Assembly (NCBI RefSeq): GCF_032444005.1
Contig: NC_091290.1
Location: 142,786,001 to 142,850,000, forward strand
Origin: Ranitomeya imitator
Lineage: Eukaryota
Reading direction: 5' to 3'
Length of the DNA: 64,000 nucleotides
The notes under the pieces are model-generated. The model ran no database searches and had not been told where the DNA came from. It saw nothing but the letters and a program-made list of their open reading frames with translations. A program made the translations under genes and the position numbers. Below, in pieces: positions 19,778-57,699 of the stretch; position 1 is the first letter of the stretch; each line of letters opens with the position of its first letter.

Positions 19778-20581
19778 ATGGTGGATCACCTGGCGTACAC
19801 AGAAATCAACAGCCAGAGGATAGCAGCTGTGGAGACATGTTTTGGTGCTGCTGGCCAACCACTCTCTCTGCCGGGAAGAGTCCTTGTAGGTGAAGGAATA
19901 TTGACGAAGGAATGTCGGAAGAAACCCAAACCAAGGGTCTTCTTTCTCTTCAGTGATATCCTCGTCTATGGAACCATTATGATAAGTAAGGTTAAGTACA
20001 GCTGCCAGCACATCATTCCCTTGGAAGACGTGACCACGGAGACACTTGATGACAGTGGAGACATGAAGAACCGGTGGATGCTAAAGACCTCCAAGAAGTC
20101 TTTTGTAGTTTGTGCTGCCTCTTACACCGAACGGGAAGAGTGGATCAGTCACATCAAGGAATGTTCCAGTAGGCTCTTGGCCAAGACTGGAAGACGAGCG
20201 TCCACCAGACACGCGGCACCATGGATACCGGATAAAGCCACCGATATCTGCATGAGATGCACCAAAACCAAGTTCACCACACTGACTCGTAGGCACCATT
20301 GTCGCAACTGCGGATTTGTAGTATGTCAACATTGTTCCCAGAACAAGTTCTTGATCCCGTCTTTGTCTTCCAAACCTCTGAGAGTCTGTGCTCTGTGTCA
20401 TCGAAAGCTGATCGCCGAAAAAATAGCCGAGGAAGATAAAAGGAAGCGACCGGACAAGACCCAAAGGGAAATGCCGGAATTTGAGCCTTCGAGTGACGAA
20501 GACAGTGATGAAGAAAGGAACACTGAGATAATTTCCAATGAAGACTTCTACTCTTCATCGTGGTCCGCGTTCCATGCCTGA
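19778..20581 (+). CDS. PLEKHF1: Pleckstrin homology and FYVE domain-containing protein 1 (Phafin1), 267 aa, single coding exon
   Basis: MVDHLAYTEINSQRIAAVETCFG...GRVLVGEGILTKECRKKPKPRVFFLFSDILVYG is the PH domain. WIPD...CMRC...RRHHCRNCGFVVC..CS...RVCALC is the FYVE domain. An acidic tail (SSDEDSDEE) follows. There is a splice acceptor ttttcag at 19763 and AATAAA at 21050-21055. The N-terminus fits PLEKHF1 rather than PLEKHF2, and synteny agrees. Confidence 0.96.
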   Translation: MVDHLAYTEINSQRIAAVETCFGAAGQPLSLPGRVLVGEGILTKECRKKPKPRVFFLFSDILVYGTIMISKVKYSCQHIIPLEDVTTETLDDSGDMKNRWMLKTSKKSFVVCAASYTEREEWISHIKECSSRLLAKTGRRASTRHAAPWIPDKATDICMRCTKTKFTTLTRRHHCRNCGFVVCQHCSQNKFLIPSLSSKPLRVCALCHRKLIAEKIAEEDKRKRPDKTQREMPEFEPSSDEDSDEERNTEIISNEDFYSSSWSAFHA

Positions 20582-30884: not shown

Positions 30885-31384
30885 CTAGTCCCCGTACTGG
30901 ATTTCGGCTTTCAGCTCCTGAGACACATAACTGATGAGCGCTGCTGCCACCTGCTGCTGTAACGCGGCATTGCCGGACACCAGCATGATGAGGTGCGTTG
31001 CGTCCGTCCAGTCCAGGTTTCGGATGATGGCGAAGATCTGCTCGCACAGTCTCTGCTGCTGCACGGGCGGCAGCTCCAGCAGGATCTGAGGGATGGGCCT
31101 GAACTGACCGTTCGTCATCCAGGCTCCTAGGACGCCCCCTAGAGCGCCGCCTGCAAAATACAAGAGTCACCGTCGTTATGAGAATCTCAACATCAGGGCC
31201 GCCAACCCCAAATCTGCACCTTACCTACAGCGATCCCTGGGGGGCCTCCTAATAATCCCCCCACAAAGGCTCCTGCGCCAGCGACCACGGCCCCCCTGGC
31301 AGAATGCTTGATGGTCGCCTTCATCTTCTGCTCCGTCGCCAGGTGGCACAAAAGGCGCAAGATGTCGTCCATGTTCACCGGCAT
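30885..31384 (-). CDS. C19orf12: C19orf12 orthologue (MPAN/NBIA4 protein), 141 aa. Coding exons 31384-31225 and 31150-30885
   Basis: [54 protein letters not shown]|[87 protein letters not shown]. 160+266 nt gives 142 codons. The intron is GT-AG and the glycine-zipper segment is present. An acceptor 8 nt before the ATG shows an upstream non-coding exon. Confidence 0.96.
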
Positions 31385-32404
31385 GTTCAGGCCTGCAACA
31401 GAAAGACGATGGTGACAAGATACAGAACAGGAGGAGCCCCCCCTACAGGCAGTCATGTGCAATGCTTACCTATGGGGGCACTCTACACTCAGCCTGATGT
31501 ACATTAAAGGGACGTGATGGACACACGAGTTATGGAGGTCCGGCACCGGGCAGCTCCATCAGCAGAGTCATTGTCACAGCAATGCTCAGTACACCGCGCA
31601 GTGGCCGATCTCAGGTACTGCATAGAATCACAGCTGCAGTACCAACAACGGCCACTGCGCGGTGTCTCTATTCACTGGGTACATCTACTGCTGGAAGTAG
31701 GGCCGATCAGATACCGATAAAGAACCTAGGGTTGGCCATCCTTATCCCAGCAGAAGACAATCCCTTTAACCCCTTTCTCTCCTCGGACGGAATAGTACGC
31801 CAACGTCAGTACCCACGCTTTGAGGTGGGCTCCGGCGGTGAGCTTTTTTTTAACCACAAAATAACCTAGTCATGTTTGGTGTCTATGAACTCGTAGTGAC
31901 CTGGAGAATCATAATGGCAGATCAGTTTTATCATTTAGTGAACCAAGCAAAAAAGCCAATCAAAAAACCAGTGTGGGATTGCACTTTTTTTGGCAATTTC
32001 ATCACCCTTCAATTTTTTTTCCAGTTTTCTAGTACACGACATGGTAAAACCAATGATGTCGTTCAAAAGTACAACTCGTCCCGCAAAAAATAAGCCCTCA
32101 CATGGCCAAATTGACGGAAAAAGGAAAAAAGTTATGGCTCTGGGAAGGAGAGGAGTGAAAAAAAGCTCCGGGGGTGAAAGGGTTAAGGCCGCATTCGCTT
32201 TGAGATTTCTAAAGAGGGTCATATATATGAAGGGCGCGAGTCACGTGACCAGCGCCAGCACAAGGCATGATGGGACGGTGTGACGCTTATCTCCTCCCTC
32301 CGTCATCTGCCTCATCTCACAGGAGGGAAATCCCGGCCACGACACCGCGGGGAGGACAAGGTCCAGCGCAGCCCGAAGAGGGGGGGAAGTCAGCAGCTGC
32401 CGGA

Positions 32405-34384
32405 TCCCATACCCCCGGGGGGACGCAGGAGACCCCCACAACACCCCACAACACCACGAGGGGACGCAGGAGACCCCCACATACCTCACATGCCCCACAA
32501 CACCACGAGGGGACGCAGGAGACCCCCACAACACCACGAGGGGACGCAGGAGACCCCCACATACCTCACATGCCCCACAACACCACGAGGGGACGCAGGA
32601 GACCCCCACATACCTCACAGGTCCCACAACACCACAAGGGGACGCAGGAGACCCCCACATACCTCACAGGCCCCACAACACCACGAGGGGACGCAGGAGA
32701 CCCCCACATACCTCACATGCCCTACAACACCACGAGGGGACGCAGGAGACCCCCACATACCTCACAGGTCCCACAACACCCCGGGGGGACGCAGGAGACC
32801 CCCACATACCTCACAGGCCCCACAACACCCCGGGGGAGGCAGGAGACCCCCACATACCTCACATGCCCCACAACACCACGAGGGGACGCAGGAGACCCCC
32901 ACATACCTCACAGGCCCCACAACACCACAAGGGGACGCAGGAGACCCCCACATACCTCACATGCCCCACAACACCACGAGGGGACGCAGGAGACCCCCAC
33001 ATACCTCACAGGCCCCACAACACCACAAGGGGACACAGGAGACCCCCACATACCTCACAGGCCCCACAACACCCCGGGGGGACGCAGGAGACCCCCACAT
33101 ACCTCACAGGCCCCACAACACCCCGGGGGGACGCAGGAGACCCCCACATACCTCACAGGCCCCACAACACCTCGGGGGGACGCAGGAGACCCCCACATAC
33201 CTCACAGGCCCCACAACACCTCGGGGGGACGCAGGAGACCCCCACATACCTCACAGGCCCCACAACACCTCGGGGGGACGCAGGAGACCCCCACATACCT
33301 CACAGGCCCCACAACACCCCGGGGGGACGCAGGAGACCCCCACATACCTCACAGGCCCCACAACACCTCGGGGGGACGCAGGAGACCCCCACATACCTCA
33401 CAGGCCCCACAACACCCCGGGGGACGCAGGAGACCCCCACATACCTCACAGGCACCACAACACCCCGGGGGGAAGCAGGAGACCCCCACATACCTCACAT
33501 GCCCCACAACACCACGAGGGGACGCAGGAGACCCCCACATACCTCACAGGCCCCACAACACCACAAGGGGACGCAGGAGACCCCCACATACCTCACATGC
33601 CCCACAACACCACGAGGGGACGCAGGAGACCCCCACATACCTCACAGGCCCCACAACACCACAAGGGGACACAGGAGACCCCCACATACCTCACAGGCCC
33701 CACAACACCCCGGGGGGACGCAGGAGACCCCCACATACCTCACAGGCCCCACAACACCCCGGGGGGACGCAGGAGACCCCCACATACCTCACAGGCCCCA
33801 CAACACCTCGGGGGGACGCAGGAGACCCCCACATACCTCACAGGCCCCACAACACCCCGGGGGACGCAGGAGACCCCCACATACCTCACAGGCACCACAA
33901 CACCCCGAGGGGACGCAGGAGACCCCCACATACCTCACAGGCCCCACAACACCTCGGGGGGACGCAGGAGACCCCCACATACCTCACAGGCCCCACAACA
34001 CCCCGGGGGACGCAGGAGACCCCCACATACCTCACAGGCACCACAACACCCCGGGGGGAAGCAGGAGACCCCCACATACCTCACAGGCACCACAACACCC
34101 CGGGGGACGCAGGAGACCCCCACATACCTCACAGGCACCACAACACCCCGGGGGACGCAGGAGACCCCCACATACCTCACAGGCACCACAACACCCCGGG
34201 GGGACGCAGGAGACCCCCACATACCTCACAGGCCCCACAACACCCCGGGGGGACGCAGGAGACCCCCACATACCTCACAGGCCCCACAACACCTTGGGGG
34301 GACGCAGGAGACCCCCACATACCTCACAGGCACCACAACACCCCGGGGGGAAGCAGGAGACCCCCACATACCTCACAGGCCCCA
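32405..34384 (+). repeat. 48-49-bp GC-rich minisatellite (~40 copies) in C19orf12 intron 1
   Basis: The unit is ggggggacgcaggagacccccacatacctcacaggccccacaacacccc. ORF starts in the track are spaced 49 or 48 nt apart. Confidence 0.96.
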
Positions 34385-34799
34385 GTGCAGATCTCTACGT
34401 ATGTGATTTCCACATCCCCGGCCACAGTCCGACTAGTCGTGCCCGGCTCGGCTCCATGCCCCTGTGTGCTGAGCCCCGGACACCACTAGTTGGACTGTGG
34501 CCGGGATTATGGTAATCACACACGTGGTCACATGACCACCGGCAGAGAATTCTCAGGACCCCATAACTATCACTCCCATCCTGCCCGAGAACAGACCAGA
34601 TATTAACCCGTGAATCACCGGACTAAATAAAATCCCAGCCCCCCCAGGTCAGATTAAAGCAGCAAAGACAAAAAACCGCAGGAGGAGAACTGAGGAACAA
34701 CGTCCCAGGTGGGAAGGGGTTAATGGAGGAAATGCAGGAGACGCACAAGTCTCAGCATGCCCAGAGAGACAGTGCTGGGACTTGTGGTCCTCGCCGCTC

Positions 34800-36295: not shown

Positions 36296-37234
36296 TAACA
36301 TAGTAACATAGTTAGTAAGGCCGAAAAAAGACATTTGTCCATCCAGTTCAGCCTATATTCCATCATAATAAATACCCAGATCTACGTCCTTCTACAGAAC
36401 CTAATGATTGTATGATACAATATTGTTCTGCTCCAGGAAGACATCCAGGCCTCTCTTGAACCCCTCGACTGAGTTCGCCATCACCACCTCCTCAGGCAAG
36501 CAATTCCAGATTCTCACTGCCCTAACAGTAAAGAATCCTCTTCTATGTTGGTGGAAAAACCTTCTCTCCTCCAGACGCAAAGAATGCCCCCTTGTGCCCG
36601 TCACCTTCCTTGGTATAAACAGATCCTCAGCGAGATATTTGTATTGTCCCCTTATATACTTATACATGGTTATTAGATCGCCCCTCAGTCGTCTTTTTTC
36701 TAGACTAAATAATCCTAATTTCGCTAATCTATCTGGGTATTGTAGTTCTCCCATCCCCTTTATTAATTTTGTTGCCCTCCTTTGTACTCTCTCTAGTTCC
36801 ATTATATCCTTCCTGAGCACCGGTGCCCAAAACTGGACACAGTACTCCATGTGCGGTCTAACTAGGGATTTGTACAGAGGCAGTATAATGCTCTCATCAT
36901 GTGTATCCAGACCTCTTTTAATGCACCCCATGATCCTGTTTGCCTTGGCAGCTGCTGCCTGGCACTGGCTGCTCCAGGTAAGTTTATCATTAACTAGGAT
37001 CCCCAAGTCCTTCTCCCTGTCAGATTTACCCAGTGGTTTCCCGTTCAGTGTGTAATGGTGATATTGATTCCCTCTTCCCATGTGTATAACCTTACATTTA
37101 TCATTGTTAAACCTCATCTGCCACCTTTCAGCCCAAGTTTCCAACTTATCCAGATCCATCTGTAGCAGAATACTATCTTCTCTTGTATTAACTGCTTTAC
37201 ATAGTTTTGTATCATCTGCAAATATCGATATTTT
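36296..37234 (-). mobile_element. CR1 LINE, 5'-truncated 3' fragment (end of ORF2 RT plus 3' UTR)
   Basis: The minus strand reads KISIFADDTKLCKAV..., then ORF 37159-36401 (DLDKLETWAERWQMRFNNDKCKVIH...RRLRGDLITMYKY...TRGHSLRLEERRF...FFTVRAVRIWNCLPEEVV). It ends in (ACTATGTT)n, seen as taacatagtaacatag on +. The frame is intact, so the copy is young. Confidence 0.93.
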
Positions 37235-38060: not shown

Positions 38061-39468
38061 TTAAGTGGTAGTGGTTGTTAGTGATGATGGCGGTTGTTGT
38101 TAATGATGGTGGCGGTTGTTGGTGGTGGTTAGTGATGATAGCAGTTGTTAGTGGTGGTTGTTGGTGATGGTGGCGGTTGTTGTTAATGATGGTGGTGGTT
38201 GTTGGTGGTGGTTAGTGATGATGGCAGTTGTTAGTGGTGGTTGTTGGTGATGGTGGCGGTTGTTGTTAATGATGGTGGTGGTTGTTGGTGATGGTGGTGG
38301 TTAGTGATGATGGCGGTTGTTAGTGGTGGTTGTTGGTGATGGCGGTTGTTAGTGGCGGTTGTTAGTGATGGTGGCGGTGGTTGTTAATGATGGTGGTGGT
38401 TGTTAGTGGTGGTTGTTAGTGATGGTGGCGGTGGTTGTTAATGATGGTGGTGGTTGTTGGTGATGGTGGTGGTTAGTGATGATGGCGGTTGTTAGTGGTG
38501 GTTGTTGGTGATGGCGGTTGTTAGTGGTGGTTGTTGGTGATGGTGGCGGTGGTTGTTAATGATGGTGGTGGTTGTTGGTGATGGTGGTGGTTAGTGATGA
38601 TGGCGGTTGTTAGTGGTGGTTGTTGGTGATGGCGGTTGTTAGTGGTGGTTGTTGGTGATGGTGGCGGTTGTTGTTAATGATGGTGGTGGTTGTTGGTCAT
38701 GGTGGTGGTTAGTGATGATGGCGGTTGTTAGTGGTGGTTGTTGGTGATGGCGGTTGTTAGTGGCGGTTGTTAGTGATGGTGGCGGTGGTTGTTAATGATG
38801 GTGGTGGTTGTTAGTTGCCTCCATGCTCTGTACCATACTGTGCAGTCTCTAGTTTGGGCTCAGGTTGATGTTCCTTGGGGACATTGTCCTGGTAGAATTC
38901 CTGCAGACATCCGTCCCTCGGCTCCACACCCGGTGGTGACTGTTCGGCTGGCTCTGCCCCTGGTCCGGTCACACCGGTACATGTTGATGGCGGTCCTGTC
39001 CTTCCCTGTACTCTGGGGTGAGATGACCCCTCGGAACCATCGCTGCCATCAGGGCGGATGTGATGTTTTCATTACCAGGGATCAGATGTCTCCTGTAAGA
39101 ACTAGAAACGCCAGGACTGAGCTGATGTGACGGGAATGTCCCCCAATATCCGCTGGTCACAGGGCGTCATACTGTGGAGACACCAGAGATCTGGGGGTGG
39201 CGCTATTTTTTTTTTTTTAAGGCCGATATATTTCTGTAAGCTTGGATTAACCCTTTAATATCGTTCAGCAGTGACCTCCGCCAGCTTTACTAGAAGATAG
39301 AACCACGACTGATCATTTGTATCTAAAGTCAAAAAACAAACACAAACATATTCAACAGATTAATATTTATTTTTCAAGTGAAAAATATAAAAAAAAATAA
39401 AATCTGATTTGTTTAAAGTGAGAGATAAAAATGTATTGGGGGCTTCACCCCATCAGTAGGGGGCAGCA

Positions 39469-42400
39469 TCAGCCCCGCAGCTCGCTGATCTTCTCCATGA
39501 ACGCCACCACCCTGTCATAGTCAACGCTCTTCCTCCAGTCGCCGCCATGTTTGAAGTGGGAGCCGACGATCATGGCGCTGGCCTCCGCGTACGTCTCCAC
39601 ATTGTCCAGCGTCACCCCAGATCCGACGAGCGCGGGGATGCGGACGGAGCGCTGCACCTCTAGGATGCAAAGAAAAGGGTCAGAAAACAACTTTTTACCA
39701 CGATTTCTGAAGCCTCCTTAGAATCTGCCACTGATACTTCTCACAGCTGGGAGTTTGTTACAATGTATCAGCGCAGGGAAAGTGCAAAACACAAGAGAAC
39801 ATCACCAGACAGTCGGGTTGTATCTGCGCTGATGCAATAGTAGCGAAGTCCCAGCTGTGAGGCAGCAGCTGTCATTGATCCCCCGTACTCCACCTTTCAG
39901 CTCCGCCGCATCGGCTTCTTGCCCGGTCGCGACTCCGGTCAGTATGACTCCATCCGCTAAAAAGAACTCCGCCGCCCTCGCCGTCTCCGAGATCGAGACG
40001 TCGGCCGTCACCGCGTGGGAGCTGAGAACAGACATTGCCTTAAAGGGGCCATCCGAAAAAAATAGCCGCACAACGCTCTCATAGTTTATTTGTACTTTTT
40101 CAGGGTCTCCGCTTGCTGTAAAGAATCGCCCACCGTCTGCTCACACTGACCTGTGCTTCTTCTTAATGTCGGCAAAGATCTGGATGTGTTCGGCGCCGAT
40201 CTCCTTGCGATAGCGCAGCAGATCCCCGGCGCAGGCGTGCACCAGGCCTTCATCAGCAACGTGAGAGAAGACAAAGCCCTCGGCTCGGATGAAGTCCAGC
40301 CCTGCACCACAGCAAAGATCAAGGGTCGGCTGGGAGTCACGTACCCGGGGGTCCTGGTCTGAGAGGGGTGGCCACCCGGATTTCCCAGGAGTAGATAGGA
40401 TAGGGAGGCGGCGGAGGGTCAATAGCACATGAGCGGGGTCACCATCATCATCGGATCGAGCCCTGATCACTCAGCTGAAGGGTTTGTTCCAATGTATCAG
40501 GAGAAAGACTGTGTCTGCAGGACGAAGTCAAGATGGGCTCTCACCCTCCAAATGTAAGCCAAACTGCCTAGGTTTGCCATTGAGGAAATAGAAAGCTGGG
40601 TTACAGCCTAGGTTTACCATTGATGATACTGGGAAAGCTGGGTTACAGCCTAGGTTCGCCATTGAGGAAACCGAGAAAGCTGGGTTACAGCCTAGGTTTC
40701 CCATTGATGACACTGGGAAAGCTGGGTTACAGCCTTGGTTTGCCATTGAGGAAACTGGGAAAGCTGGGTTACAGTACTAGGTTTGCATTGAGGATACTGG
40801 GAAAGCTGGGTTACAGCCTAGGTTTCCCATTGATGATACTGGGAAAGCTGGGTTACAGTACTAGGTTTGCATTGAGGATATTGGGAAAGCTGGGTTACAG
40901 TACTAGGTTTGCATTGAGGATACTGGGAAAGCTGGGTTACAGCCTAGGTTTCCCATTGATGATACTGGGAAAGCTGGGTTACAGTACTAGGTTTGTATTG
41001 AGGATATTGGGAAAGCTGGGTTACAGTACTAGGTTTGCATTGAGGATACTGGGAAAGCTGGGTTACAGCCTAGGTTTACCATTGATGATACTGGTAAAGC
41101 TGGGTTACAGCTTAGGTTTGCATTGAGGGAAATCTGGGATAAAGCAATTTCAAGCTACAAAGTGGAAAAACAATGGGTAAACCTGGATTCACTGTGCGCT
41201 GCTGAATAACTGGAAGTCCGGGCGTATTATCAATATAAATTGTAATTTTTATTAATTCTGTGTCATTTTGTGGTGTTTCCTGATGAAGTCTTAGAACTTT
41301 GAGACGTGCCGAATGAATAAAAACCACAATTTATATTGATAATACGCCCGAACGTCCAGTTATTCAGCAGCGCAGAGTGAATCCACATTTACCCATTGTT
41401 TTTCCCTTCGGTTGGTCACTATTGGACCTGTGGATCTGCTGCAGCGAATACGTCTATAAGCTTAATTTTAGCTCCATCTGATGAGTTCAATTAAATCATA
41501 TTAAACCACTAGCTGAAGAGCAGTGCATTGCCCGAGCATAGTAACCAACTGTTGTTAGCTACAGCAAATTATAATGATTATCCTCCATCCCATAGTCCCG
41601 TGCCCATATACTCATTATGACACCATCGTCGATACATAAACACATACACTCGTTTTTATATATACACTGCTCAAAAAAAAAATAAGGGAACACAAACAAC
41701 AGAATCTAACTCCAAGTAAATGAAACTTCTGTGAAATCAAACTGTCCACTTAGGAAGCAACACTGATTGACAATCAATTTCACATGCTGCTGTGCAAATG
41801 GAGTAGACAACAGATGGAAATTATTGGCAATTATCAAGACCCCCTCAATAAAGGAGTGGTTCTGCAGGTGGGGACCACAGACCACATCTCAGTACCAATG
41901 CTTTCTGGGTGATGTTTTGGGCACTTTTGAATGTTGGTTGTGCTTTCAGACTCATGGTAGCATGAGACGGACTCTACAACCCACACAAGTGGCTCAGGTA
42001 GTGCAGCTCATCCAGGATGGCACATCAATGCGAGCTGTGGCAAGAAGGTTTGCTGTGTGTCAGCGTAGTGGCCAGAGGCTGGAGGCGCTACCAGGAGACA
42101 GGCCAGTACACCAGGGAAGATGGAGGGGGCTGTAGGAGGGCAACAACCCAGCAGCAGGACCACTACCTCCGCCTTTCTGCAAGGAGGAGCACTGCCAGAG
42201 CCCTGCAAAATGACCTCCAGCAGGCCACAAATGTGCATATGTCTACACAAACGGTTAGAAACCGACTCCATGAGGATGGTCTGAGGGCCCGACGTCCACA
42301 AATAGGGGTTGTGCTCACAGCCCAGCACCGTGCAGGACGCTTGGTATTTGCCACAGAACACCAGGATTGGCAAATTCGCTACTGGCGCCCTGTGATCTTC

Positions 42401-45400
42401 ACAGATGAAAGCAGGTTCACACTGAGCACATGTGACAGACGTGACAGAGTCTGTAGACGCCGTGGAGAGCGATCTACTGCCTGCAACATCCTTCAGCATG
42501 ACCGGTTTGGCGGTGGGTCAGTAATGGTGTGGGGTGGCATTTCTTTGGAGGGCTGCACAGCCCTCCATGGGCTCGCCAGAGGTAGCCTCACTGCCGTTAG
42601 GTACCGAGATGAGATCCTCAGACCCTTTGTGAGACCATATGCTGGTGCGGTTGGCCTTGGGTTCCTCCTAATGCAGGACAATGCCAGACCTCATGTGGCT
42701 GGAGTGTGTCAGCAGTTCCTGCAAGATGAAGGCATTGAAACTATGGACTGGCCGCCCGTTCCCCAGACCTGAATCCGATTGAACACATCTGGGAAATCAT
42801 GTCTCGCACCATCCACCAACGTCACATTGCACCACAGACTGTCCAGGAGTTGGCGGATGCTTTAGTCCAGGTCTGGGAGAACATCCCTCAGGAGACCTTC
42901 CGTCGCCTCATCAGGAGCATGCCCAGGCATTATAGGGAGGTCATACAGGCACATGGAGGCCACACACACTACTGAGCATCATTTCCTTGTCTTGAGGCAT
43001 TTCCACTGAAGTTGGATCAGCCTGTAACTTCATTTTCCACTATGATTATCATTCCAAATCCAGACCTCCATGGGATGTTAATTTGATTTACATCGATAAT
43101 TTTTATGTTTTATTGTTCTCAACACATTCCACTATGTAGTGAAATATTTTATTCAGTGATATCTAGGATGTGGGACTTTAGTGTTCCCTTTATTTTTTTG
43201 AGCAGTGTATACAGATTTGTATCCTGTATAAGACCCTATTTGCGCTATTTTCTCCAGCAGCACTTATAAGCTACAAAGTTCATGATACCCAGCTTTCCAT
43301 GGTTTCTGAATGCACACAATGGACATACTTCTCTCACTGATGTTTACCTGCCGCCAGTGCAACTGCCAGGGCCTGCTGATTGCCGCAAGCGAGAACCTGA
43401 ACACCGAGAGGGAGTCGTGGGCATGTCTGCCTGACAGCGGCACAGACAGCGGCCATGGATGCTGTAACCTCCGGTCCGATACGAAGGGTATACGGGACGT
43501 CATTCATGTTCTCCACTATCAGGCCATCCTGGTAAGAGAAAAATCACCGATTTCAGTGACGGCTCAAACAATCCACAGTGCAGGTCACTCTCCAATGTCA
43601 CAGTCGCTGCACCACTGATCAACAAACAGATAAATGCCAAGCAGAGCGAAACACCAGCAAAGGGGTGATGTCTACTGCTTAGAGTTACAAAGGATTGCTA
43701 TACTCATTTCTGCTGGGATACATGGTAAGATCCTGACTGCAGCCACCACTAGGGGGAGCTCCCTGTATACAGAGATATATGGTAAGATCCTGACTGCAGC
43801 CACCACTAGGGGGAGCTCCCTGTATACAGAGATACATGATAAGATCCTGTCTGCAGCCACCACTAGGGGGAGCTCCCTGTATACAGAGATACATGATAAG
43901 ATCCTGTCTGCAGCAGCCACTAGGGGGAGCTCCCTGTATACAGAGATACATGATAAGATCCTGTCTGCAGCCACCACTAGGGGGAGCTCCCTGTATACAG
44001 AGATACATGATAAGATCCTGTCTGCAGCCACCACTAGGGGGAGCTCCCTGTATACAGAGATACATGATAAGATCCTGTCTGCAGCCACCACTAGGGGGAG
44101 CTCCCTGTATACAGAGATACATGATAAGATCCTGTCTGCAGCCACCACTAGGGGGAGCTCCCTGTATACAGAGATATATGGTAAGATCCTGACTGCAGCC
44201 ACCCTGCAGTCACCACTAGGGGGAGCTCCCTGTATACAGAGATACATGATAAGATCCTGTCTGCAGCCACTACTAGGGGGAGCTCCCTGTATACAGAGAT
44301 ACATGGTAAGATCCTGACTGCAGCCACCACTAGGGGGAGCTCCCTGTATACAGAGATATATGGTAAGATCCTGACTGCAGCCACCACTAGGGGGAGCTCC
44401 CTGTATACAGAGATACATGATAAGATCCTGTCTGCAGTCACCACTAGGGGGAGCCCCCTGTATACAGAGATACATGACAAGATCCTGTCTGCAGCCACCT
44501 CTAGGGGGAGCTCCCTGTGTACAGAGATACATGATAACATCCTGTCTGCAGCCACCACTAGGGGGAGCTTCCTGTATACAGAGATACATGATAAGATCCT
44601 GTCTGCAGCCACCACTAGGGGGAGCTTCCTGTATACAGAGATACATGATAAGATCCTGTCTGCAGCCACCACTAGGGGGAGCTCACTGTATACAGAGATA
44701 CATGATAAGATCTGTCTGCAGCCACCACTAGGGGGAGCTCCCTGTATACAGAGATACATGATAAGATCCTGTCTGCAGCAGCCACTAGGGGAAGCTCCAT
44801 GTATACAGATACATGATAACATCCTGTCTGTAGTCACCACTAGGGGGAGCTCCCTGTATACAGAGATACATGATAAGATTCTGTCTGCAGCCACCACTAG
44901 GGGGAGCTCCCTGTATACAGAGATACATTATAAGATCCTGTCTGCAGCCACCACTAGGGGGAGCTCCCTGTATACAGAGATACATGATAAGATCCTGTCT
45001 GCAGCCACCACTAGGGGGAGCTCCCTGTATACAGAGATACATGATAAGATTCTGTCTGCAGCCACCACTAGGGGGAGCTCCCTGTATACAGAGATACATG
45101 ATAAGATCCTGTCTGCAGCCACCACTAGGGGGAGCTCCCTGTATACAGAGATACAATATAACTTGATGCTATGGGATTATACAGTGAACAAGTTTTATAT
45201 TAACTAAAAAAAAGAAAAACTTTGAAGACTTCTCACTGAAGTTTAGAGGAGCGAGGTTGATAATTAGCAGGGAAGGTTTCCATACCAGTCTCCTTTGCCA
45301 TCTGAAGATGGAGAGGAATGTAGACATGTCACCTGAATAACACAAGACCAGGCATTGCTTACAATCCCAGCTTTCCTGTAGACCTCTGCCTCCTGACACG

Positions 45401-45595
45401 CCTGCTCCAGGACCTGCCCCACAGGTAATGTACAGCCTGGAGATCCTATTCATCAGGGACAATGGAAACATTAGCATCACAATGAAAAATTAGCATCACA
45501 GCCCCCCAGCCTGGAAGCCCACCTGGTAAAGCTTTCAGATGCACCATGCCTATGACAATGGACCGCCACCTTCCAAAGAGTTGCAAAAACTTCAT
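39469..45595 (-). CDS. BtpA/SgcQ-family TIM-barrel protein (F13E9.13-like), 268 aa. Coding exons 45595-45523, 45445-45363, 43528-43348, 40301-40151, 40021-39894, 39659-39469
   Basis: [25 protein letters not shown]|[27 protein letters not shown]|[61 protein letters not shown]|[50 protein letters not shown]|[43 protein letters not shown]|[62 protein letters not shown]. 73+83+181+151+128+191 = 807 nt, with all five introns GT-AG and phases consistent. Family motifs: GMVHLxALPG, DGLIVEN..D.PY, ADIKKKH, DGVILTG..TG, VGSGVT, IVGS.FK. A minus-strand AATAAA lies at 39366-39371. Confidence 0.92.
40565..41126 (+). repeat. 42-bp minisatellite (gggaaagctgggttacagcctaggtttcccattgatgatact) in intron 3 of the BtpA-like gene
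   Basis: About 13 tandem copies; it explains the [17 protein letters not shown]. Confidence 0.93.
41665..43207 (+). mobile_element. Full-length Tc1/mariner transposon with a frameshifted transposase, in intron 3 of the BtpA-like gene
   Basis: TA|cactgctcaaaaaaaaaataagggaacac ... gtgttccctttatttttttgagcagtg|TA, 1543 bp, with TA TSDs. Confidence 0.93.
41962..42975 (+). pseudogene. Tc1 DD34E transposase pseudogene
   Basis: [32 protein letters not shown], then a frameshift at ~42060. It continues ...VIFTDESRF...MVWGGIS...[10 protein letters not shown]...DWP, then a second frameshift at ~42760. It ends [10 protein letters not shown]...GGHTHY* at 42975. Confidence 0.9.
43717..45154 (+). repeat. 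57-bp minisatellite (~25 copies), each unit with a CTCF-like core CCACTAGGGGGAGC, in intron 2 of the BtpA-like gene
   Basis: The unit is atgataagatcctgtctgcagccaccactagggggagctccctgtatacagagatac. The 19-aa periodicity in the ORF track confirms 57 bp. Confidence 0.96.
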
Positions 45596-46339
45596 TGCCT
45601 AAAATAAATAATTCCAGAATTTAGATCACACTGGATCCCCAGCGAAAACCTGTACTGAATGCATTCACTGGGTAAAGACTTGTCAGGTAGCCAGAACTTG
45701 GGACTAGTGTGGGGGGGTGGGGGGCGGGGGGTGGTGATCAGTGCTCCGGGGGCTTCAAAAGGGGGTGAATGATCCAATATTAGAAGGTTTGGGGAAGGGC
45801 TCCACTTCCTTCAGGTATACCCCCAGATAAGAAGGGGGGGGGGGGGGGTCACAGTACATTTGTAGGCCTGACATTCCAGTCTCTGGAGGGGACATTGGTG
45901 TTTTTGCTTTTTCAGTATCATCTCCGGCTATCAAGGTGACTCTTCTTGGCCCAGGTCAGAATTAAAAAAAGCTCAGATCTGGTCCAAACTGATTGTGAAA
46001 AAATCCACCCTTAATAGTATGTGTGGAAACTTTCACTACAAGGACCTGCAGCCCCCCCCAATCTTGAATATAGGGGTCTTTGTCCTTAGCTCCCAGAGAG
46101 CTCGTCCGTGTGACATCCGTTTTTATACAGCAATCAAAATAGGTTTGCAGTCCTCCTGAACTACAAAACGCTGGTGTGAACAAGCCCTAAACCCGAGGAG
46201 CCGTTTTTACAGATTAACCCTTAATAATCCCTGATTTTTCAGCCCCATTAATGTTTGTTATGTGATCACAGCTGAGAGATTAGAACACGAGTGGAATAGA
46301 GGGGGCCCTGCGTGACCCCGTACAATGGATCCGCCTGTG

Positions 46340-46580
46340 TAACCGATAGACCCTCACCCCAATACTCCGCGCCCCCCGCTCCTCGCTGTTGACATCCAGC
46401 AGCCCACGTGTTCTGCCCACTTCCAGGTTCCTGTCCCGCCTCCCCCGCTCCACGCCCTGGGCGCCAGTCCCTCCCTGCGGTCCCCGGTCCCGACTGCCAG
46501 CGTTTATAACGGGGGAGGCCGGGGATTGCCTGAACAGCCCCCCGAAAAGCCCAGAACGCCTGATGCTCACCGCCAAGGAC
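46340..46580. promoter_or_regulatory. CpG-rich candidate bidirectional promoter shared by the BtpA-like gene (-) and CCNE1 (+)
   Basis: This GC/CpG-rich patch lies between the two divergent coding starts, both of which are preceded by splice acceptors. It contains GC boxes, an ETS core cacttcc (~46419), an E2F-like tgtcccgc (~46432) and a minus-strand donor GGG|GTGAGG (exon ending 46358). A candidate CCNE1 UTR exon lies at 46771-46835. Confidence 0.55.
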
Positions 46581-47348
46581 CGGTGCCCCCCATTTTCTAG
46601 ATTTACCTGCTAGCTTTACCTGCCCCCCAGCTTCTCTTAGGGGGGTACCCTGTAGCCACCATGCAGCTGTGCAGTCATTCTCCATGAGACCCCTATTTCT
46701 CTGGTGCCCCCCCCCCCCCACTTTTCTGCCCCTTTAAACTAATCTATTTATTTTTCCCCTTTGAATTCAGACTTTTTACTCACTTTCCCCCTCGCTGCCC
46801 CCCCTTGCTCAGCATCCTGCACCCCAACATCTGTGGTAAGTTCTTGGCACGGTTTTTACACTTTTAGGGGGTCCCCATAGTTTATTTGGGGGTGGGGAGC
46901 GCTAACTTGTTCTATGGGGGTCTCCAGTAAAGAGCTGCCCGTTTGCTGTGCATGTGGCACTGTAGGCCTCACCAGGCTTGAAATGGTTAATGCTTTGGAC
47001 CCTTGCCAAAGTGGATAGCCCTGCTGGCCTTATCTATTGGCATGCAAGAGGGTCAATTTTGCAAATTAGGGGGGTGGGGGGGACAATCCCGCCCTCCTCT
47101 CCTCCTATATAAACTTTGCAGCCATTCTCCAGCTTGGCTCACTTTTTGGGGGGCTATGTGTGTAGGAGGCCAGCACTCTGGATTAAGTCTCTGGTGAAGG
47201 CGATGTCTTGAGACCCCAGCTGCCCAGCACCGAACTTCTGCACTTTCACCCTGAGACCCCCAGCTGCCCCCTAAATGTAAATATTCCCCCCCCTGCTTCT
47301 CTTCATTTCAGCTGCGACCCCTGCAAATTCCACCCCTGGGACCCTGAG

Positions 47349-50300
47349 ATGCCCAATATGAGGTAGGTGCAGAGCCCCCCATCCAGTCCTCCACCCATCC
47401 CCCTCCTGGGACCTATTTATTAATATTTTATTATTATTTTCAGTAAATGCCTAGAAGAAAATCCTACAAAGGAGGAGAGGAGCGAACACTCCAGGAAGAG
47501 GAAGGCAGATATGGCCACTGTAAGTGCCTACAGGGGGTCTATGGGGGGCTGCTGTGGGGTGTATGGGGGGCTGCTGCTCACTGTCTACTGCTTATTTATG
47601 CAGTTTCTGCAAGATCCAGGAGAAAACTCAGACATGGAGCTTATGGAAATGAACAGGAAGAAGCAGTTCGAGCAGCAGGTAATGGCGGATACTTTGTATC
47701 ACTTTCTACAGATTTGTTTGTAAATAGAACGTTGTTTGTTCTGTGCTCTGGATACATTGTATGGGGATGTGCTGCCCAGAGATTCCCCCTCCAAAAAAAC
47801 TAACCCTTCATATTGTGAACACCTGATTACATGCAATCCCCCCACACTGGTCTCTGATGTCCATCCTGCACATTATATGGATTTGTTGTAAGGGCTTATA
47901 CTGTGAATCCATTTACCCTGATAATAGGATCCCTGGCTGTACAGCAAAGTGGGCATCCATGTTACAATGGACTTTTCTCCTCCCCTGGAACACATAGGCG
48001 AAGACGCACACACGTGTCTCATTGTACACTTTTTTTTTTTTTTCTTGCACATTCTGTAGTGTTTGTCATTTTGAGCTATTAAATATTTATTTTTATAGCA
48101 CTTTTCTCACCTTTTAACTAACTGGTGTGCTGCCTCCATTTTGTAAAAAAAAATTTTTATATATTANNNNNNNNNNNNNNNNNNNNNNNNNNNNNNNNNN
48201 NNNNNNNNNNNNNNNNNNNNNNNNNNNNNNNNNNNNNNNNNNNNNNNNNNNNNNNNNNNNNNNNNNNNNNNNNNNNNNNNNNNNNNNNNNNNNNNNNNNN
48301 NNNNNNNNNNNNNNNNNNNNNNNNNNNATAGCTGAGTTTTAGCATACACTTGCCCCTATTGACCCCCTTCCCAGCTGCTGAGTGGAGGGGCTTTATAGCA
48401 ATGCTAATGGATTACCTGGCATATATGTTTTCTACCTGTATAAATACAGTTAGTGTGTGCTTGGCACTTTTATCATTTAGGCTATTCCTATATTATTATT
48501 ATTATTTTGATTATTTAATATTATTGATGTTACTTTTTAATATTTTTAACCATGTTAATTTGAGTATTCTAGATTATATACTATTAGTACTGCAATAAAA
48601 ACATATTAGTACTTATAATAGTACTAATATGTGTACTAATGTACTAATACTAATGTATATCACTAAACATTAGTGATACATATTATGTATCACTAATACT
48701 CCTCTCCAGCTGCCTCTGTAAGGCTATGTGCACACGTTCAGGTTTTTTCGCGCTAAACGCAATAAAAACTCATTAAAAACGCATACATTATGCATTCTAT
48801 CACTTAGAATGCATTCTGCATGTTTTGTTCACATGGATGTATTTTTTTACCGTGAGAAGAAAAAAAAAAAAAAAAAAACGCATCGCGGTAAAAAAATGAG
48901 CATGTTCATTATTTTTGCGGATTTTCTGCGTTTTTCCCGCAATTCTATGCACTTGGGGAAAAAAACGCACCAAAAACGCATGCGGATTTCTGGCAGAAAT
49001 GTCTGGGTTTTTGTCAGGAAAATTTCTGCAAGAAATCCTGACGTGTGCACATACCCTAAGTGTAGTCTGATCTGGTGTTTGCTCCTCACAGGGCGAGATG
49101 CTCTGAAGCTTGGGAACCCATGGGAGTTGTAGTCCAGTGACCTCCTTGTACATTAGATCCGGTCTTCGTCATGTGTAGGGGCAGGGTGCCACACTGACCA
49201 ATATGCCAACACAGAGATCAGATGACAAGAGGTTAATAAAGCAGAGATAATACATTTTTTTTTTCCCATTTTTAGGCTGATCGGAGCTTTAACTTGTGGC
49301 AATGCAACAACCAGTTTGTCCCTAGACCCCAGAGACAACCCTGGGCGCCATACATTACCCCTGGTCCCGAATACGCCAGCCTGAGATTCCGGTGGTCTTC
49401 ATTCTCTCCTCTTCCACCTCTCAGGTATACAACTAAGTACCATAGTGGATAGTACCATAGTGGATTGTAGTCCTAACTGCTTGGACATCATGGGGGATAT
49501 GAAGTTTAGTGATTATATTTTTATGGTGCTCATGATTATTTATTTATTTATATATTTATTTTTTGCAGCTGGGCGAACCCAGATGATGTGTGGCAGAACT
49601 TGCTGCTCAAAGACGCAACATACGTAAGGGACAAGAATGTCTTTCAAAGACACCCGAATATGGACGGGAGCATGAGGTCTGTGCTGCTGGACTGGCTGAT
49701 GGAGGTGAGTATGCTGCGCCCCACTTGTGTTCCCGGCGGTCTCGCCCATAGATCTTAGTGATTGGATACTCCGGTTAGGACATTATTTTATATATTTGGC
49801 CACTGTGCTTCTCTGATAATTGGCAGATGCTGCCCCTCTTGGTTGGATTGCTGCACCTCTTGGTCGGATTGCCGCACCTCTTGGTCGATCCCATACCGTC
49901 TCACAGCCGATCCCTTTTCATCGTCAGGTTTCCGAGGTTCATAAGCTACACAGAGAGACTTACTACCTGGCACAAGATTTCATGGACCGCTTTCTGGCGA
50001 CACAAGCGAACGTGAGGAAATCCAAGCTGCAGCTCATCGGCGTCACCTGCCTATTCATCGCCTCCAAGATGGAGGTAGGTGCCTTCTCTTGCCTCCTTTT
50101 TTGATCCCCTGGATCTCTTGATTGGCGGGGTCCCCCCCCCCCCTTACCCTGTAATGTGCCCACCCTGTGCCGCTGGTTGGCATCATCTAAGATCCAAAGC
50201 TTCACTGATTGTAAATTCCATCTTCTGCGAATCCTTCAGTAATTGTCTGAATTCTGGCATTTTAGGAGATCTACCCTCCGAAGCTCCACGAGTTCTCCTA

Positions 50301-51568
50301 CTACTCCGACTGCTCCTGCACCGAGGAAGAGATGATGAAAATGGAGCTGATAATCATGAAGGTGAGGCTGGTGGTCTGGGGCCTGACCTGTTCGGTTTAT
50401 TAATGTAGGACTGGCCCTTTTAAGCGATGGGTTAACCCTTTCCTCTCCTCAGGCACTTAATTGGTGTTTGACGCCGATCACTGTGGTCTCCTGGTTGAAC
50501 ATTTACTTACAAATGGCGCACAGCAAAGAACTGCAGCACTTTCTCCTTCCCCAGTATCCACACATCACCTACTTAAAGATAATGGAGGTAAGGTGGGCTC
50601 CTGTGTGACTTAGGGGGGTCTTTAGTGTCCGACCGTCTGATAACTGTCCTGTCTTCTTCCAGCTCCTGGATTTATGTACCCTGGACGTCCGGAGCCTGGA
50701 ATATTCCTACCGCATCCTGGCCGCCTCTGCCCTCTATCACTGCACCAACGAGCAGTATCTGCAGGAGATGACGGGTACGTCTGTGGGTGGGTGTGGAAAA
50801 TGGGGGGGGCAGCTCCATATTGTGGCCTAATGTCCGCCAGACTCCCCCTGCTGGCCGGAGATGGAGACACGTTACAGCTGCAGAACTCTGGGTGACTGAT
50901 ACATTGTATCTGCCTGCAAATGTCAGATCTGTATCAAAGCTCCATTCACTGCCAGGTGCAGGCGGCTCCGTGTGCCAGATGTTGGGGTTTTGCGTTCTTC
51001 ACACCCTCACCTTCTTGTCTGCCTTTATTTCCAGGCTGTAAGTGGACGGACCTTCAGAAGTGCATTCAGTTCTTGTTACCTTTTGTGATCGCGATCAGAG
51101 ACACTGGGAGGTCCACAAAGCTGGAGTTTTTCGCCGGGGTGGACGTCACGGAAATGCACACGATCCAGACATACCGGGACCGCGCCGAGCTGCTGGTGAG
51201 TAGTGTGACCCTGGGGCACCAGCCGAGCAGTCGGCACGTGGGGGGGCTGATGTGTGGTCTGCAGACACTTGTGCGTTATGATTGCCGGAGATGCACTATA
51301 AAGGGGCACCACTCCTCTACATTCCCCTTGAACCCCCCCAACGTTATTGGGCGGCGGTCCTGTATCTTTAGATTACACAATTCCCCGGCGTCTCCTCCAC
51401 TCCGGTCCGTTTTTGTTTTTCCCTGTTTTTTTTTTTTAATTTTCTTTTTTCTTTCAGGAAAATGCCCGAACTATAGGCAGAATGATGGAAATGAAGAGAA
51501 ACGCTGAGGACCACCACTACAGTGTCCTGACGCCCCCCCTAACCGTCACGAAACCGTGGAGCGACTAG
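47349..51568 (+). CDS. CCNE1: G1/S-specific cyclin E1, 403 aa. Coding exons 47349-47362, 47444-47519, 47604-47678, 49276-49424, 49569-49704, 49928-50074, 50266-50361, 50453-50587, 50663-50774, 51035-51195, 51458-51568
   Basis: MPNMS|[25 protein letters not shown]|[25 protein letters not shown]|ADRSF...[18 protein letters not shown]|[15 protein letters not shown]...[11 protein letters not shown]|[26 protein letters not shown]...[16 protein letters not shown]|[10 protein letters not shown]...MELIIMK|[20 protein letters not shown]...|LLDLCTLD...|[10 protein letters not shown]...|...[14 protein letters not shown]. The exons sum to 1212 nt, all GT-AG, with phases as in mammalian CCNE1. E1 rather than E2 is supported by synteny. 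Confidence 0.95.
48167..48327. other. Assembly gap (161 N) inside a CCNE1 intron
   Basis: A run of N. The flanking exons join in phase, so no coding exon is evidently missing. Confidence 0.99.
48722..49056. mobile_element. PIF/Harbinger-type (Tourist-like) MITE in a CCNE1 intron
   Basis: TAA|ggctatgtgcacacg ... cgtgtgcacataccc|TAA, with a 3-bp TAA TSD and GG termini. Confidence 0.82.
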
Positions 51569-56524: not shown

Positions 56525-56945
56525 GGCTTCTTTCACACTAGCGTCGGAATCTCCCCGTCGCAATGCGTCGGGGAGAGATTCCGACGCTAGCGTTTGCTGC
56601 ATTGCACAATGGGTGCAGCGGATGCATTTTTCCGGCGCAACCGCTGCCCCATTGTAAGGTGCGGGGAGGTGGGGGCGGAGTTCCGGTCGCGCATGCGCGG
56701 TCGGAAAAAGCAGTCCGTCAGGAGAAAAAAACGTTACATGTAGTGTTTTTTTCTCCCGACGGTCCGCAAAAGCACGACGCATCCGTCGCTCGACGGATGC
56801 GACGTGTGGCAATCCGTCACAAATGCGTCGTCAATGCAAGTCTATGGGGAAAAAACGCATCCTGCAAGCACTTTTGCAGGATGCGTTTTTTCTGCAAAAC
56901 AACGCATTGTGACGGATTGCAGAAAACGCTAGTGTGAAAGTAGCC
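56525..56945. mobile_element. Harbinger-type MITE
   Basis: The TIRs are ggcttctttcacactagcgt ... acgctagtgtgaaagtagcc. The flanks aaa/taa form an imperfect TSD. Confidence 0.75.
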
Positions 56946-56986
56946 TAATCTGCACAGAGCTGAGCCTAAACCTGGAGCTGTCACCT

Positions 56987-57678
56987 CCAGCCTCCACACT
57001 CTGCAGCTCTCCTCTCAGTCCAGCCTCCACACTCTGCAGCTCTCCTCTCAGTCCAGCCTCCACACTCTGCAGCTCTCCTCTCAGTCCAGCCTCCACACTC
57101 TGCAGCTCTCCTCTCAGTCCAGCCTCCACACTCTGCAGCTCTCCTCTCAGTCCAGCCTCCACACTCTGCAGCTCTCCTCTCAGTCCAGCCTCCACACTCT
57201 GCAGCTCTCCTCTCAGTCCAGCCTCCACACTCTGCAGCTCTCCTCTCAGTCCAGCCTCCACACTCTGCAGCTCTCCTCTCAGTCCAGCCTCCACACTCTG
57301 CAGCTCTCCTCTCAGTCCAGCCTCCACACTCTGCAGCTCTCCTCTCAGTCCAGCCTCCACACTCTGCAGCTCTCCTCTCAGTCCAGCCTCCACACTCTGC
57401 AGCTCTCCTCTCAGTCCAGCCTCCACACTCTGCAGCTCTCCTCTCAGTCCAGCCTCCACACTCTGCAGCTCTCCTCTCAGTCCAGCCTCCACACTCTGCA
57501 GCTCTCCTCTCAGTCCAGCCTCCACACTCTGCAGCTCTCCTCTCAGTCCAGCCTCCACACTCTGCAGCTCTCCTCTCAGTCCAGCCTCCACACTCTGCAG
57601 CTCTCCTCTCAGTCCAGCCTCCACACTCTGCAGCTCTCCTCTCAGTCCAGCCTCCACACTCTGCAGCTCTCCTCTCAG
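56987..57678 (+). repeat. Perfect 33-bp minisatellite, 21 copies (ccagcctccacactctgcagctctcctctcagt)
   Basis: 692 bp equals 21 units, and I saw no substitutions. Confidence 0.98.
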
Positions 57679-57699
57679 CGCTGCCAAAACGTTTCTGCT

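Follow-up and report, generated by a model that had tools for sequence, protein, structure and literature searches.

What does a protein of the BtpA/SgcQ family do in a frog, and what became of its gene in mammals? The locus that raises these questions lies in a stretch of 64,000 nucleotides (nt) of the Ranitomeya imitator genome (NCBI RefSeq assembly GCF_032444005.1, contig NC_091290.1, positions 142,786,001 to 142,850,000 of the forward strand), which we call the window and from whose first letter coordinates are counted. A preliminary description, made from the letters of the window, had proposed that the minus strand carries at 45595-39469 an intact gene for an uncharacterised protein of this family, which was lost in the mammalian lineage and which probably encodes an enzyme that acts on a phosphorylated sugar or nucleotide. 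We find that this BtpA-like gene is transcribed and spliced, and that its sequence points to strong constraint. Overall, we consider the best explanation, at fair odds, to be that its product is a constrained barrel that would act as an enzyme on a phosphate ester, with a possible link to pseudouridine.

The BtpA-like gene is intact and already annotated

The gene model was rebuilt from the window DNA by translation and by reading of splice sites, which resulted in six exons on the minus strand, a coding sequence (CDS) of 807 nt and a protein of 268 amino acids (aa) with zero internal stops. All five introns have the form GT..AG, and their phases are consistent. Exon 1 (45523-45595) begins with the ATG at 45595-45593, which follows an in-frame stop two codons upstream, and encodes residues 1-24 plus 1 nt before its GT donor. 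Exon 2 (45363-45445), which comprises 83 nt between AG and GT ends, encodes residues 25-52 and has the same intron positions in the flatfish Limanda and in platypus. Residues 53-112 plus 1 nt are encoded by exon 3 (43348-43528), which features the stretch E58-N59-x-x-D62-x-P64-Y65 with its invariant residues as well as Q96, and which matches the BtpA profile with an E-value of 4e-10. Exon 4 (40151-40301) encodes residues 113-162, including R118, E120, D129-E130-G131, R142 and D157-x-K-K-K-H162, and exon 5 (39894-40021) encodes residues 163-205, including H165, D170, D186 and T191-G192. Exon 6 (39469-39659) encodes residues 206-268, which include the putative phosphate grip G218-S219-G220 and G238-S239, and ends with the TGA stop at 39471-39469. 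Exons 3-6 match the Pfam BtpA family (PF03437) colinearly, at profile positions 44-101, 105-151, 156-193 and 197-253. The rebuilt gene agrees in every detail with the six phase-consistent exons initially described. The same applies to the mobile and repetitive DNA that had been placed in its introns: a satellite of 25 copies of a 57-bp unit (43717-45155) lies in intron 2, while intron 3 contains a satellite of 13.5 copies of a 42-bp unit (40566-41128) and a plus-strand open reading frame (ORF) for a Tc1/mariner-type transposase (42017-42772) with HTH_Tnp_Tc3_2 and DDE_3 domains. The N-terminus of the protein is basic, as had been noted, and its first acidic residue is E37.

The 57-bp satellite unit features a CCACTAGGGGGAGC stretch, which resembles the core of a CTCF site.

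The spliced model is 100% identical, over 268 of 268 aa, to a RefSeq protein of R. imitator named 'uncharacterized protein F13E9.13, mitochondrial-like isoform X2' (P0373), and the CDS span annotated in the R. imitator assembly is 6127 nt, which equals the rebuilt span. We used exon 3 to search a representative library of 1.84 billion proteins, and later performed word-index searches with the kakapo and platypus proteins. The exon 3 query returned vertebrate proteins named 'uncharacterized protein F13E9.13, mitochondrial(-like)' from flatfish, emu, chicken, finch, lamprey and catshark; the gene is named zgc:162297 in zebrafish, LOC415758 in chicken and LOC549154 in Xenopus tropicalis. The gene is thus already known, with annotations in R. 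imitator and hundreds of other vertebrates, and the novelty that had been proposed for it does not hold.

Membership in the family was assessed with profile models. The full-length protein scores 223.4 bits against PF03437 (cut-off 30), spanning profile positions 5-253 of 254, and 214.4 bits against NCBIfam TIGR00259 (cut-off 153.4), which places it within the BtpA family as had been expected. In contrast, it scores 163.7 bits against the equivalog model for cyanobacterial BtpA (NF045918), which fails the cut-off of 400. In R. imitator, the gene represents the orthologue of the BtpA/SgcQ-family gene found in animals. The F13E9.13-type genes of Caenorhabditis elegans, zebrafish, chicken, X. tropicalis, platypus and echidna represent this same gene, and the frog gene differs from its vertebrate counterparts, with whose products its protein shares 66-88% identity, only in the species-specific content of its introns, i.e., the Tc1 element and the two satellites. 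The animal homologues had been called uncharacterised, and we likewise found no published function for them in the literature searched, where 'F13E9.13' turns up only in two gene tables. The word 'mitochondrial' in the database name is inherited from the entry for the nematode C. elegans.

Names within the family can mislead. In the literature, 'BtpA' mostly denotes an unrelated Brucella TIR effector. A BtpA-family protein of 271 aa from Euleptes europaea (P0327) is called 'protein C19orf12 homolog isoform X1' in UniRef, which is probably a naming slip from the adjacent gene.

The gene is transcribed and spliced

Twenty public sequencing runs contain part of the interval 39440-40520, and for most of them the part corresponds to approximately the exons' share of words. 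We compared transcript contigs from four public runs, which stem from four studies and are presumed to be RNA, with the window. In each of the four runs, contigs join 39659 to 39894 and 40021 to 40151, and thereby skip exactly 39660-39893 and 40022-40150, the ends of which read CT..AC on the plus strand and hence GT..AG on the strand of the gene. Each run also features a contig that continues from exon 4 into the end of exon 3 (coverage 40151-40305, with a loose end at 40305). One transcript contig of 1001 nt, with a depth of 66, represents approximately the whole mRNA. Intron contigs were present in three runs and were mostly shallower than exon contigs; because the intron-less form is found in four studies and the intron contigs are thinner, the pattern is that of RNA-seq. 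Relative to the window, the contigs show two differences, both of which are synonymous: GGA to GGC at 39949 (G187), and GCA to GCG (Ala) at approximately 43366, near the end of exon 3. The predicted joints of exons 3-6 are therefore present in contigs of four studies, and we conclude that the BtpA-like gene is transcribed and spliced as predicted.

Constraint and distribution among vertebrates

The vertebrate orthologues that we compared are all 268 aa long and align with the frog protein without gaps. Identity to the frog protein is 88% for another dendrobatid, 70-84% for other amphibians, 70% for platypus, 67-72% for fishes and 57% for lamprey. The CDSs that we rebuilt for Limanda and platypus consist of six exons of 73, 83, 181, 151, 128 and 191 nt with GT-AG introns, the positions and phases of which are those of the frog gene. 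Between frog and platypus, nucleotide identity at codon positions 1, 2 and 3 is 0.73, 0.86 and 0.41. In all three pairs the nonsynonymous divergence (dN) was 0.20-0.26 and the synonymous divergence (dS) was saturated, which resulted in an upper bound of approximately 0.14 for their ratio, omega. These values show that strong purifying selection has acted on the gene from before the divergence of fishes and tetrapods. A maximum-likelihood tree recovered the dendrobatids, neobatrachians, frogs, salamanders, squamates, platypus with echidna, and teleosts, without an unusually long monotreme branch; with 268 columns the deep nodes of this tree are unresolved, and we used the shallow groupings alone. 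Taken together, the sequences indicate that the BtpA-like gene is vertically inherited and strongly constrained.

The searches returned orthologues from lamprey, chimaera, sharks, bichir, gar, bowfin and approximately 100 teleosts, as well as from a caecilian, salamanders, many frogs, tuatara, lizards, snakes, turtles, a crocodilian and many birds. Platypus and echidna each encode an intact orthologue of 268 aa, and the two proteins are 91% identical; the platypus copy adjoins cyclin E. When the platypus protein served as the query, echidna ranked first; identities of 75-78% were next reached by a crocodilian, lizards and a turtle, after which came amphibians and fishes down to 68%. No marsupial or placental protein was among the best 120 matches listed for either the platypus or the kakapo query. 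An intact therian orthologue should outrank the reptiles in the platypus list, so the lack of therians there suggests absence. From naming practice, we infer that the name borrowed by NCBI from a nematode implies that there is no closer reviewed human or mouse protein. The gene thus appears to have been lost on the therian stem and kept in monotremes. Of the proposal that the gene was lost in the mammalian lineage, the part that concerns therians appears to stand, as no therian protein was among the matches listed, whereas the intact genes of platypus and echidna show that mammals as a whole did not lose it.

Several database entries depart from the common form. The catshark Scyliorhinus torazame gene (P0080) consists of a single exon of 768 nt that encodes 255 aa, unlike the six-exon genes of flatfish, frog and platypus, and may be a retrocopy or a quirk of assembly or annotation. 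Among bird RefSeq isoforms (P0020, P0161, P0013, P0151 and P0036), several diverge from the family after exon 4 or exon 5, and the Lonchura striata model has unrelated residues in place of exon 5. Other birds have full-length forms of 268 aa.

Predicted fold and conserved residues

AlphaFold2, supplied with an alignment of 67 sequences, returned a model with a mean predicted local distance difference test (pLDDT) score of 93.5 and a predicted template modelling (pTM) score of 0.92. The model consists of eight strands that alternate with helices; it begins with a helix at residues 2-7 and a first strand from residue 13, and it has a less certain loop after strand 5. This model confidently predicts that the protein is a single-domain (beta/alpha)8 barrel, which bears out the TIM barrel of the preliminary description.

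Conservation was assessed in an alignment of 87 sequences, which contained the proteins of the frog and of further animals along with 72 homologues from bacteria of many phyla. Seven residues are invariant (E58, N59, D62, P64, G94, L98 and R142). At least 95% conservation was observed for H19, P24-G25, Y65, E72, Q96, N102, R118, E120, D129-E130-G131 and D157 in the first part of the protein, and for K160-K161-H162, H165, D170, D186, T191-G192, G218-S219-G220, N225, G238-S239 and K242 in the rest. Approximately 45 residues reach at least 95% conservation across animals and many phyla of bacteria. Based on the strand positions assigned by DSSP in the model, nearly all conserved polar residues lie at or just past the C-terminal ends of strands. 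In TIM-barrel enzymes, substrate binding and turnover take place at these strand ends, and the lid usually follows strand 5. In the model, the K-K-H...H...D stretch lies within the flexible loop after strand 5.

We found no structure of a BtpA-family protein among Protein Data Bank (PDB) entries; searches with single exons yielded noise, and a profile search yielded weak C-terminal matches only. In the latter, the family profile weakly matched the C-terminal third (beta6-beta8) of 3-hexulose-6-phosphate synthase (HPS; E-value 1e-4), HisF, NanE, TrpA and orotidine monophosphate decarboxylase (OMPDC). The nearest folds of the model, obtained with Foldseek and VIA-align, showed Z scores of 16-20 and root-mean-square deviations of 2.5-3.2 Å over 190-224 residues, with sequence identities of 10-19%. 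They included HPS, thiamine-phosphate synthase, MJ1099 with phosphoribosyl pyrophosphate, GGGPS, CutC, HisF, KDPG aldolases, NanE and PRA isomerase, enzymes in which glycine-rich loops that follow strands 7 and 8 hold a phosphate. Both G218-S219-G220 and G238-S239 belong to the part with profile-level likeness to HPS, HisF, NanE and TrpA. It is therefore reasonable to propose that the GSG and (IV)GS segments are phosphate-binding loops after strands 7 and 8 of the modelled barrel, and the earlier comparison of these segments with the phosphate-binding halves of ribulose-phosphate-type barrels is in line with both the profile and the predicted fold. The likeness to phosphate-binding barrels (HPS, HisF/HisA, TrpA, NanE, OMPDC, thiamine-phosphate synthase and GGGPS) concerns the fold and the phosphate part in beta6-beta8, but their catalytic residues differ from those conserved in the frog protein. 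BtpA-type proteins are a separate family, and no single barrel family stands out as theirs.

Bacterial relatives and their gene context

Hundreds of relatives were found when one genome of each prokaryotic species was scanned, and the best 80 were used for counts of gene context. The proteins of these 80 loci share 48-61% identity with the frog protein along its full length and keep the conserved residues, and it is their gene context that should be informative about the animal protein. This animal-like bacterial subfamily (TIGR00259) includes members from Flavobacteriia, Saprospiraceae, Myxococcota, Acidobacteriota, Anaerolineae and Kiritimatiellia, and its genes are intronless. Based on this similarity, these relatives probably share the biochemical activity of the frog protein. 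Longer BtpA-containing proteins were considered as fusions and set aside: none has an informative second domain, and one with UDP-glucose dehydrogenase looks like a merged gene model.

The two named members of the family are less close. Synechocystis BtpA (NF045918) shares the Pfam family and fold class of the frog protein, which scores far below the cut-off of that equivalog model, and the role reported for it lacks an animal counterpart. The preliminary description had stated that BtpA stabilises photosystem I, which is outdated: according to PMC11449065, the current view is that BtpA of cyanobacteria stabilises glutamyl-tRNA reductase by binding it, and hence supports the accumulation of chlorophyll and photosystems. 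Escherichia coli K-12 SgcQ (b4303) belongs to the same family and has the same length, 268 aa. Its gene lies between the IIC and IIA genes of a phosphotransferase system (PTS), beside the putative epimerase gene sgcE, in the sgcXBCQAER operon, as had been noted. However, SgcQ is a poor guide to the frog protein, to which it is 31% identical; E58, D62, K160-K161-H162, GSG and GS are all replaced, and most invariants of the animal subfamily are gone. We rejected SgcQ as an orthologue based on this identity, the differing active-site residues and the lack of recurrent PTS neighbours described below.

For each of the 80 loci, we called ORFs, clustered the neighbours and sought recurring families. 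In 13 of the 80 loci, which stem from four phyla, genes for a PfkB-family kinase, Indigoidine_A (PF04227, PsuG) or both lie no more than two genes away from the BtpA-like gene; the chance expectation is approximately 0.1 loci in 80 for a gene pair that is present about once per genome. The kinase together with Indigoidine_A is what marks pseudouridine kinase (PsuK) and pseudouridine-5'-phosphate glycosidase (PsuG). Three Saprospiraceae and seven Flavobacteriia loci have PfkB/PsuG in divergent orientation, one Chlorobiota genome (L065) encodes a PfkB-PsuG fusion as the neighbour, and Myxococcota (L032) and Acidobacteriota (L050) loci feature tight same-strand operons in the order BtpA, PfkB, PsuG, which were confirmed with Pfam. 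Because the arrangements differ between phyla, they do not represent one inherited block. The pseudouridine pathway formed by PsuK/PUKI and PsuG/PUMY is reported to be absent from mammals, so that the absence of the pathway from mammals and that of the gene from therians follow the same pattern, albeit a coarse one.

No recurrent PTS genes emerged from the clustering of neighbours in the 80 loci. Other linked neighbours, i.e., OmpA, a Rce1-like protein, DXS, succinate dehydrogenase, a 3-keto-disaccharide hydrolase and RRF, were confined to one order-level group of Bacteroidota (Marinilabiliales-like) and were set aside as lineage synteny. For a planctomycete homologue, gene context was uninformative.

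Genomic neighbourhood

Neighbouring genes were identified from the annotation of the same assembly, from comparison with the teleost locus and from Pfam scans of single exons. The CDS of a CCNE1-like cyclin E gene (47349-51568, plus strand; Cyclin_N and Cyclin_C domains, 403 aa) forms a head-to-head pair with the BtpA-like gene, in which 1754 nt separate the BtpA-like ATG (45595) from the cyclin E ATG (47349). On the other side, the C19orf12 CDS (30885-31384; PF20721, 141 aa) shares the minus strand with the BtpA-like gene and lies approximately 8.1 kb downstream of its stop codon. Farther along are a PLEKHF1-like single-exon ORF (19778-20581, plus strand) with PH and FYVE domains and a plus-strand ORF at 1804-2229, which seems to resemble the N-terminal part of human POP4; a Pfam scan of this ORF yielded no hit. 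The annotation, the teleost comparison and Pfam agree on the PLEKHF1-like, C19orf12 and cyclin E genes, and together with the POP4-like ORF these lie in the order that had been described.

The head-to-head arrangement with cyclin E is also found in the flatfish Limanda limanda, with approximately 1.4 kb between the coding regions, and in the frog Phyllobates and in platypus, with approximately 4.1 kb and 4.2 kb, respectively. In Limanda (L001, 17749-20942), a DOR/TP53INP gene separates the BtpA-like gene from C19orf12. The conserved neighbour of the BtpA-like gene is therefore cyclin E and not C19orf12. In honeybee, an F13E9.13 gene and TP53INP2 are listed in one numbered gene group (table in PMC9734179), which suggests that they are neighbours; together with the flatfish locus, this listing raises the possibility that the linkage of BtpA and DOR may be very old.

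Between the two ATGs of the frog locus lies a CpG-rich patch (46201-46600), with a G+C content of up to 0.68 and an observed/expected CpG ratio of 0.7-0.8, which is a candidate for a shared promoter or a 5' untranslated exon. Based on the spacing of 1754 nt, this patch and the conserved pairing, it is plausible that a bidirectional promoter is common to the BtpA-like gene and cyclin E1. The interval between the two genes yielded no strict E2F-type motif.

The window also includes several other features. Large tandem arrays (minisatellites) are unusually abundant, and the long multi-frame ORFs at 2122-5883, 8655-10220, 32241-34515, 56929-57687 and 58246-63949 are non-genes. A minus-strand ORF of 252 aa (36401-37159) resembles the C-terminal part of ORF2 of a non-LTR retrotransposon and had no Pfam hit at an E-value of 0.01. 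A run of 161 N (48167-48327) lies within the cyclin E gene region.

Discussion

Based on the predicted fold and the conserved residues, we propose that the protein is a soluble enzyme with a phosphate grip and an acid/base cluster, which we regard as probable. In this mechanism, G218-S219-G220 in the beta7 loop and G238-S239 in the beta8 loop would hold a phosphate ester. Residues H19, E58, N59, D62, Q96, R118, E120, D129-E130, R142 and D157 on the C-terminal face would act on the remainder of the substrate, and the mobile beta5 loop would contribute K160-K161-H162, H165 and D170. We hold with much less assurance that the substrate could be a 5-phosphopentose or nucleotide-type metabolite tied to the breakdown of pseudouridine-5'-phosphate, a tentative suggestion by analogy with bacteria that stems from the repeated presence of the closest bacterial orthologues in or beside PsuK/PsuG operons and from the absence of the pathway in mammals. 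More doubtful still is the fuller version, by which animal-type BtpA would be an unrecognised salvage enzyme for pseudouridine or modified nucleotides that acts on a 5-phosphoribosyl compound produced or consumed by PsuK and PsuG and was discarded on the therian stem together with the pathway.

Several observations weigh against these proposals. The list of structural neighbours is flat, with no single closest enzyme, and consequently no particular reaction can be inferred from it. In 67 of the 80 bacterial loci, no pseudouridine genes are nearby. E. coli has PsuK and PsuG but only the divergent SgcQ, and Arabidopsis degrades pseudouridine while BtpA is described as prokaryote-only among photosynthetic organisms (PMC11449065); co-occurrence of BtpA and pseudouridine breakdown therefore cannot be obligatory. 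The absence from therians was judged from a single collection and its annotated proteins of 147-469 aa; fragments, fusions and unannotated genes would escape such a search, and therian DNA was not searched. Finally, the sole member of the family studied experimentally, cyanobacterial BtpA, is reported to bind and stabilise another enzyme rather than to catalyse (PMC11449065).

This last point raises the alternative that the frog protein is a non-catalytic stabiliser or a metabolite-sensing partner, whose barrel pocket would serve to sense a ligand or to bind a protein. On the cyanobacterial equivalog model, the frog protein nevertheless reaches 164 bits, albeit far under the cut-off of 400. 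The approximately 45 conserved residues, many of which carry a charge and are found at the strand ends on the catalytic face, form a pattern more like that of an enzyme, and the operons shared with two catabolic enzymes suggest a role in metabolism. Animals are not known to have glutamyl-tRNA reductase, the known partner, and make 5-aminolevulinate without it. We therefore regard a stabiliser or sensor as unlikely. The position of sgcQ between PTS genes and next to sgcE, in a family member of the same 268 aa, would instead suggest a sugar-phosphate enzyme that works with a ribulose-phosphate epimerase on a pentose or pentitol phosphate imported by a PTS, with no link to pseudouridine. Yet the protein behind this idea is the one that lacks E58, D62, K160-K161-H162 and both glycine-serine loops, whereas the bacterial proteins that keep all these residues are the ones 48-61% identical to that of the frog, and the clustered neighbours in those 80 loci included no recurrent PTS genes. 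Animals, moreover, lack a PTS, and we consider an SgcQ-type activity the least probable of the functional alternatives.

Slightly better placed, although still improbable, is a protein of the mitochondrial matrix or associated with mitochondrial membranes that is functionally tied to C19orf12, as could be supposed from the C. elegans-derived name, from a basic N-terminus with no acidic residue before E37 and from the location of C19orf12 8 kb downstream on the same strand. In the teleost Limanda, however, the DOR gene intervenes before C19orf12, and the conserved pairing is with cyclin E. The N-terminus shows no extension relative to the bacterial homologues, which are of equal length, as had been described. 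Its first ten residues have a mean pLDDT of 90 and lead through the helix at residues 2-7 into strand 1 at residue 13, and such confident folding suggests that the N-terminus is part of the barrel and not an extension; some database isoforms have longer N-termini, which are dissimilar to one another. No extension thus stands ahead of the folded domain, where a cleavable presequence would be, and import by other signals could still occur. That the gene is instead decaying or mis-annotated, with no present function in R. imitator, is hardly credible: a transposon and two satellites reside in its introns, and several bird isoforms are without the last exons, but its ORF is uninterrupted and its splice sites are canonical, four studies contain spliced transcripts, all conserved residues remain, and the pattern of identity across codon positions is that of a constrained coding gene. 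An enzyme that acts on a phosphate ester thus remains the reading that we favour.

The gene is not new, and what makes it notable is how little is known about it. An enzyme-like protein of 268 residues is 48-61% identical between a frog and many bacterial phyla and has no function in the literature searched, a neglect that is probably explained by the missing human counterpart. The monotreme copy beside cyclin E1 dates the loss to the therian stem, and the linkage to PsuK and PsuG in bacteria provides a concrete list of candidate substrates. If the proposed link to pseudouridine holds, COG0434-type proteins throughout life would gain a function, and nucleotide salvage an extra step that is missing in therians; a loss of the gene together with the pathway would help explain why therians excrete pseudouridine instead of recycling it.

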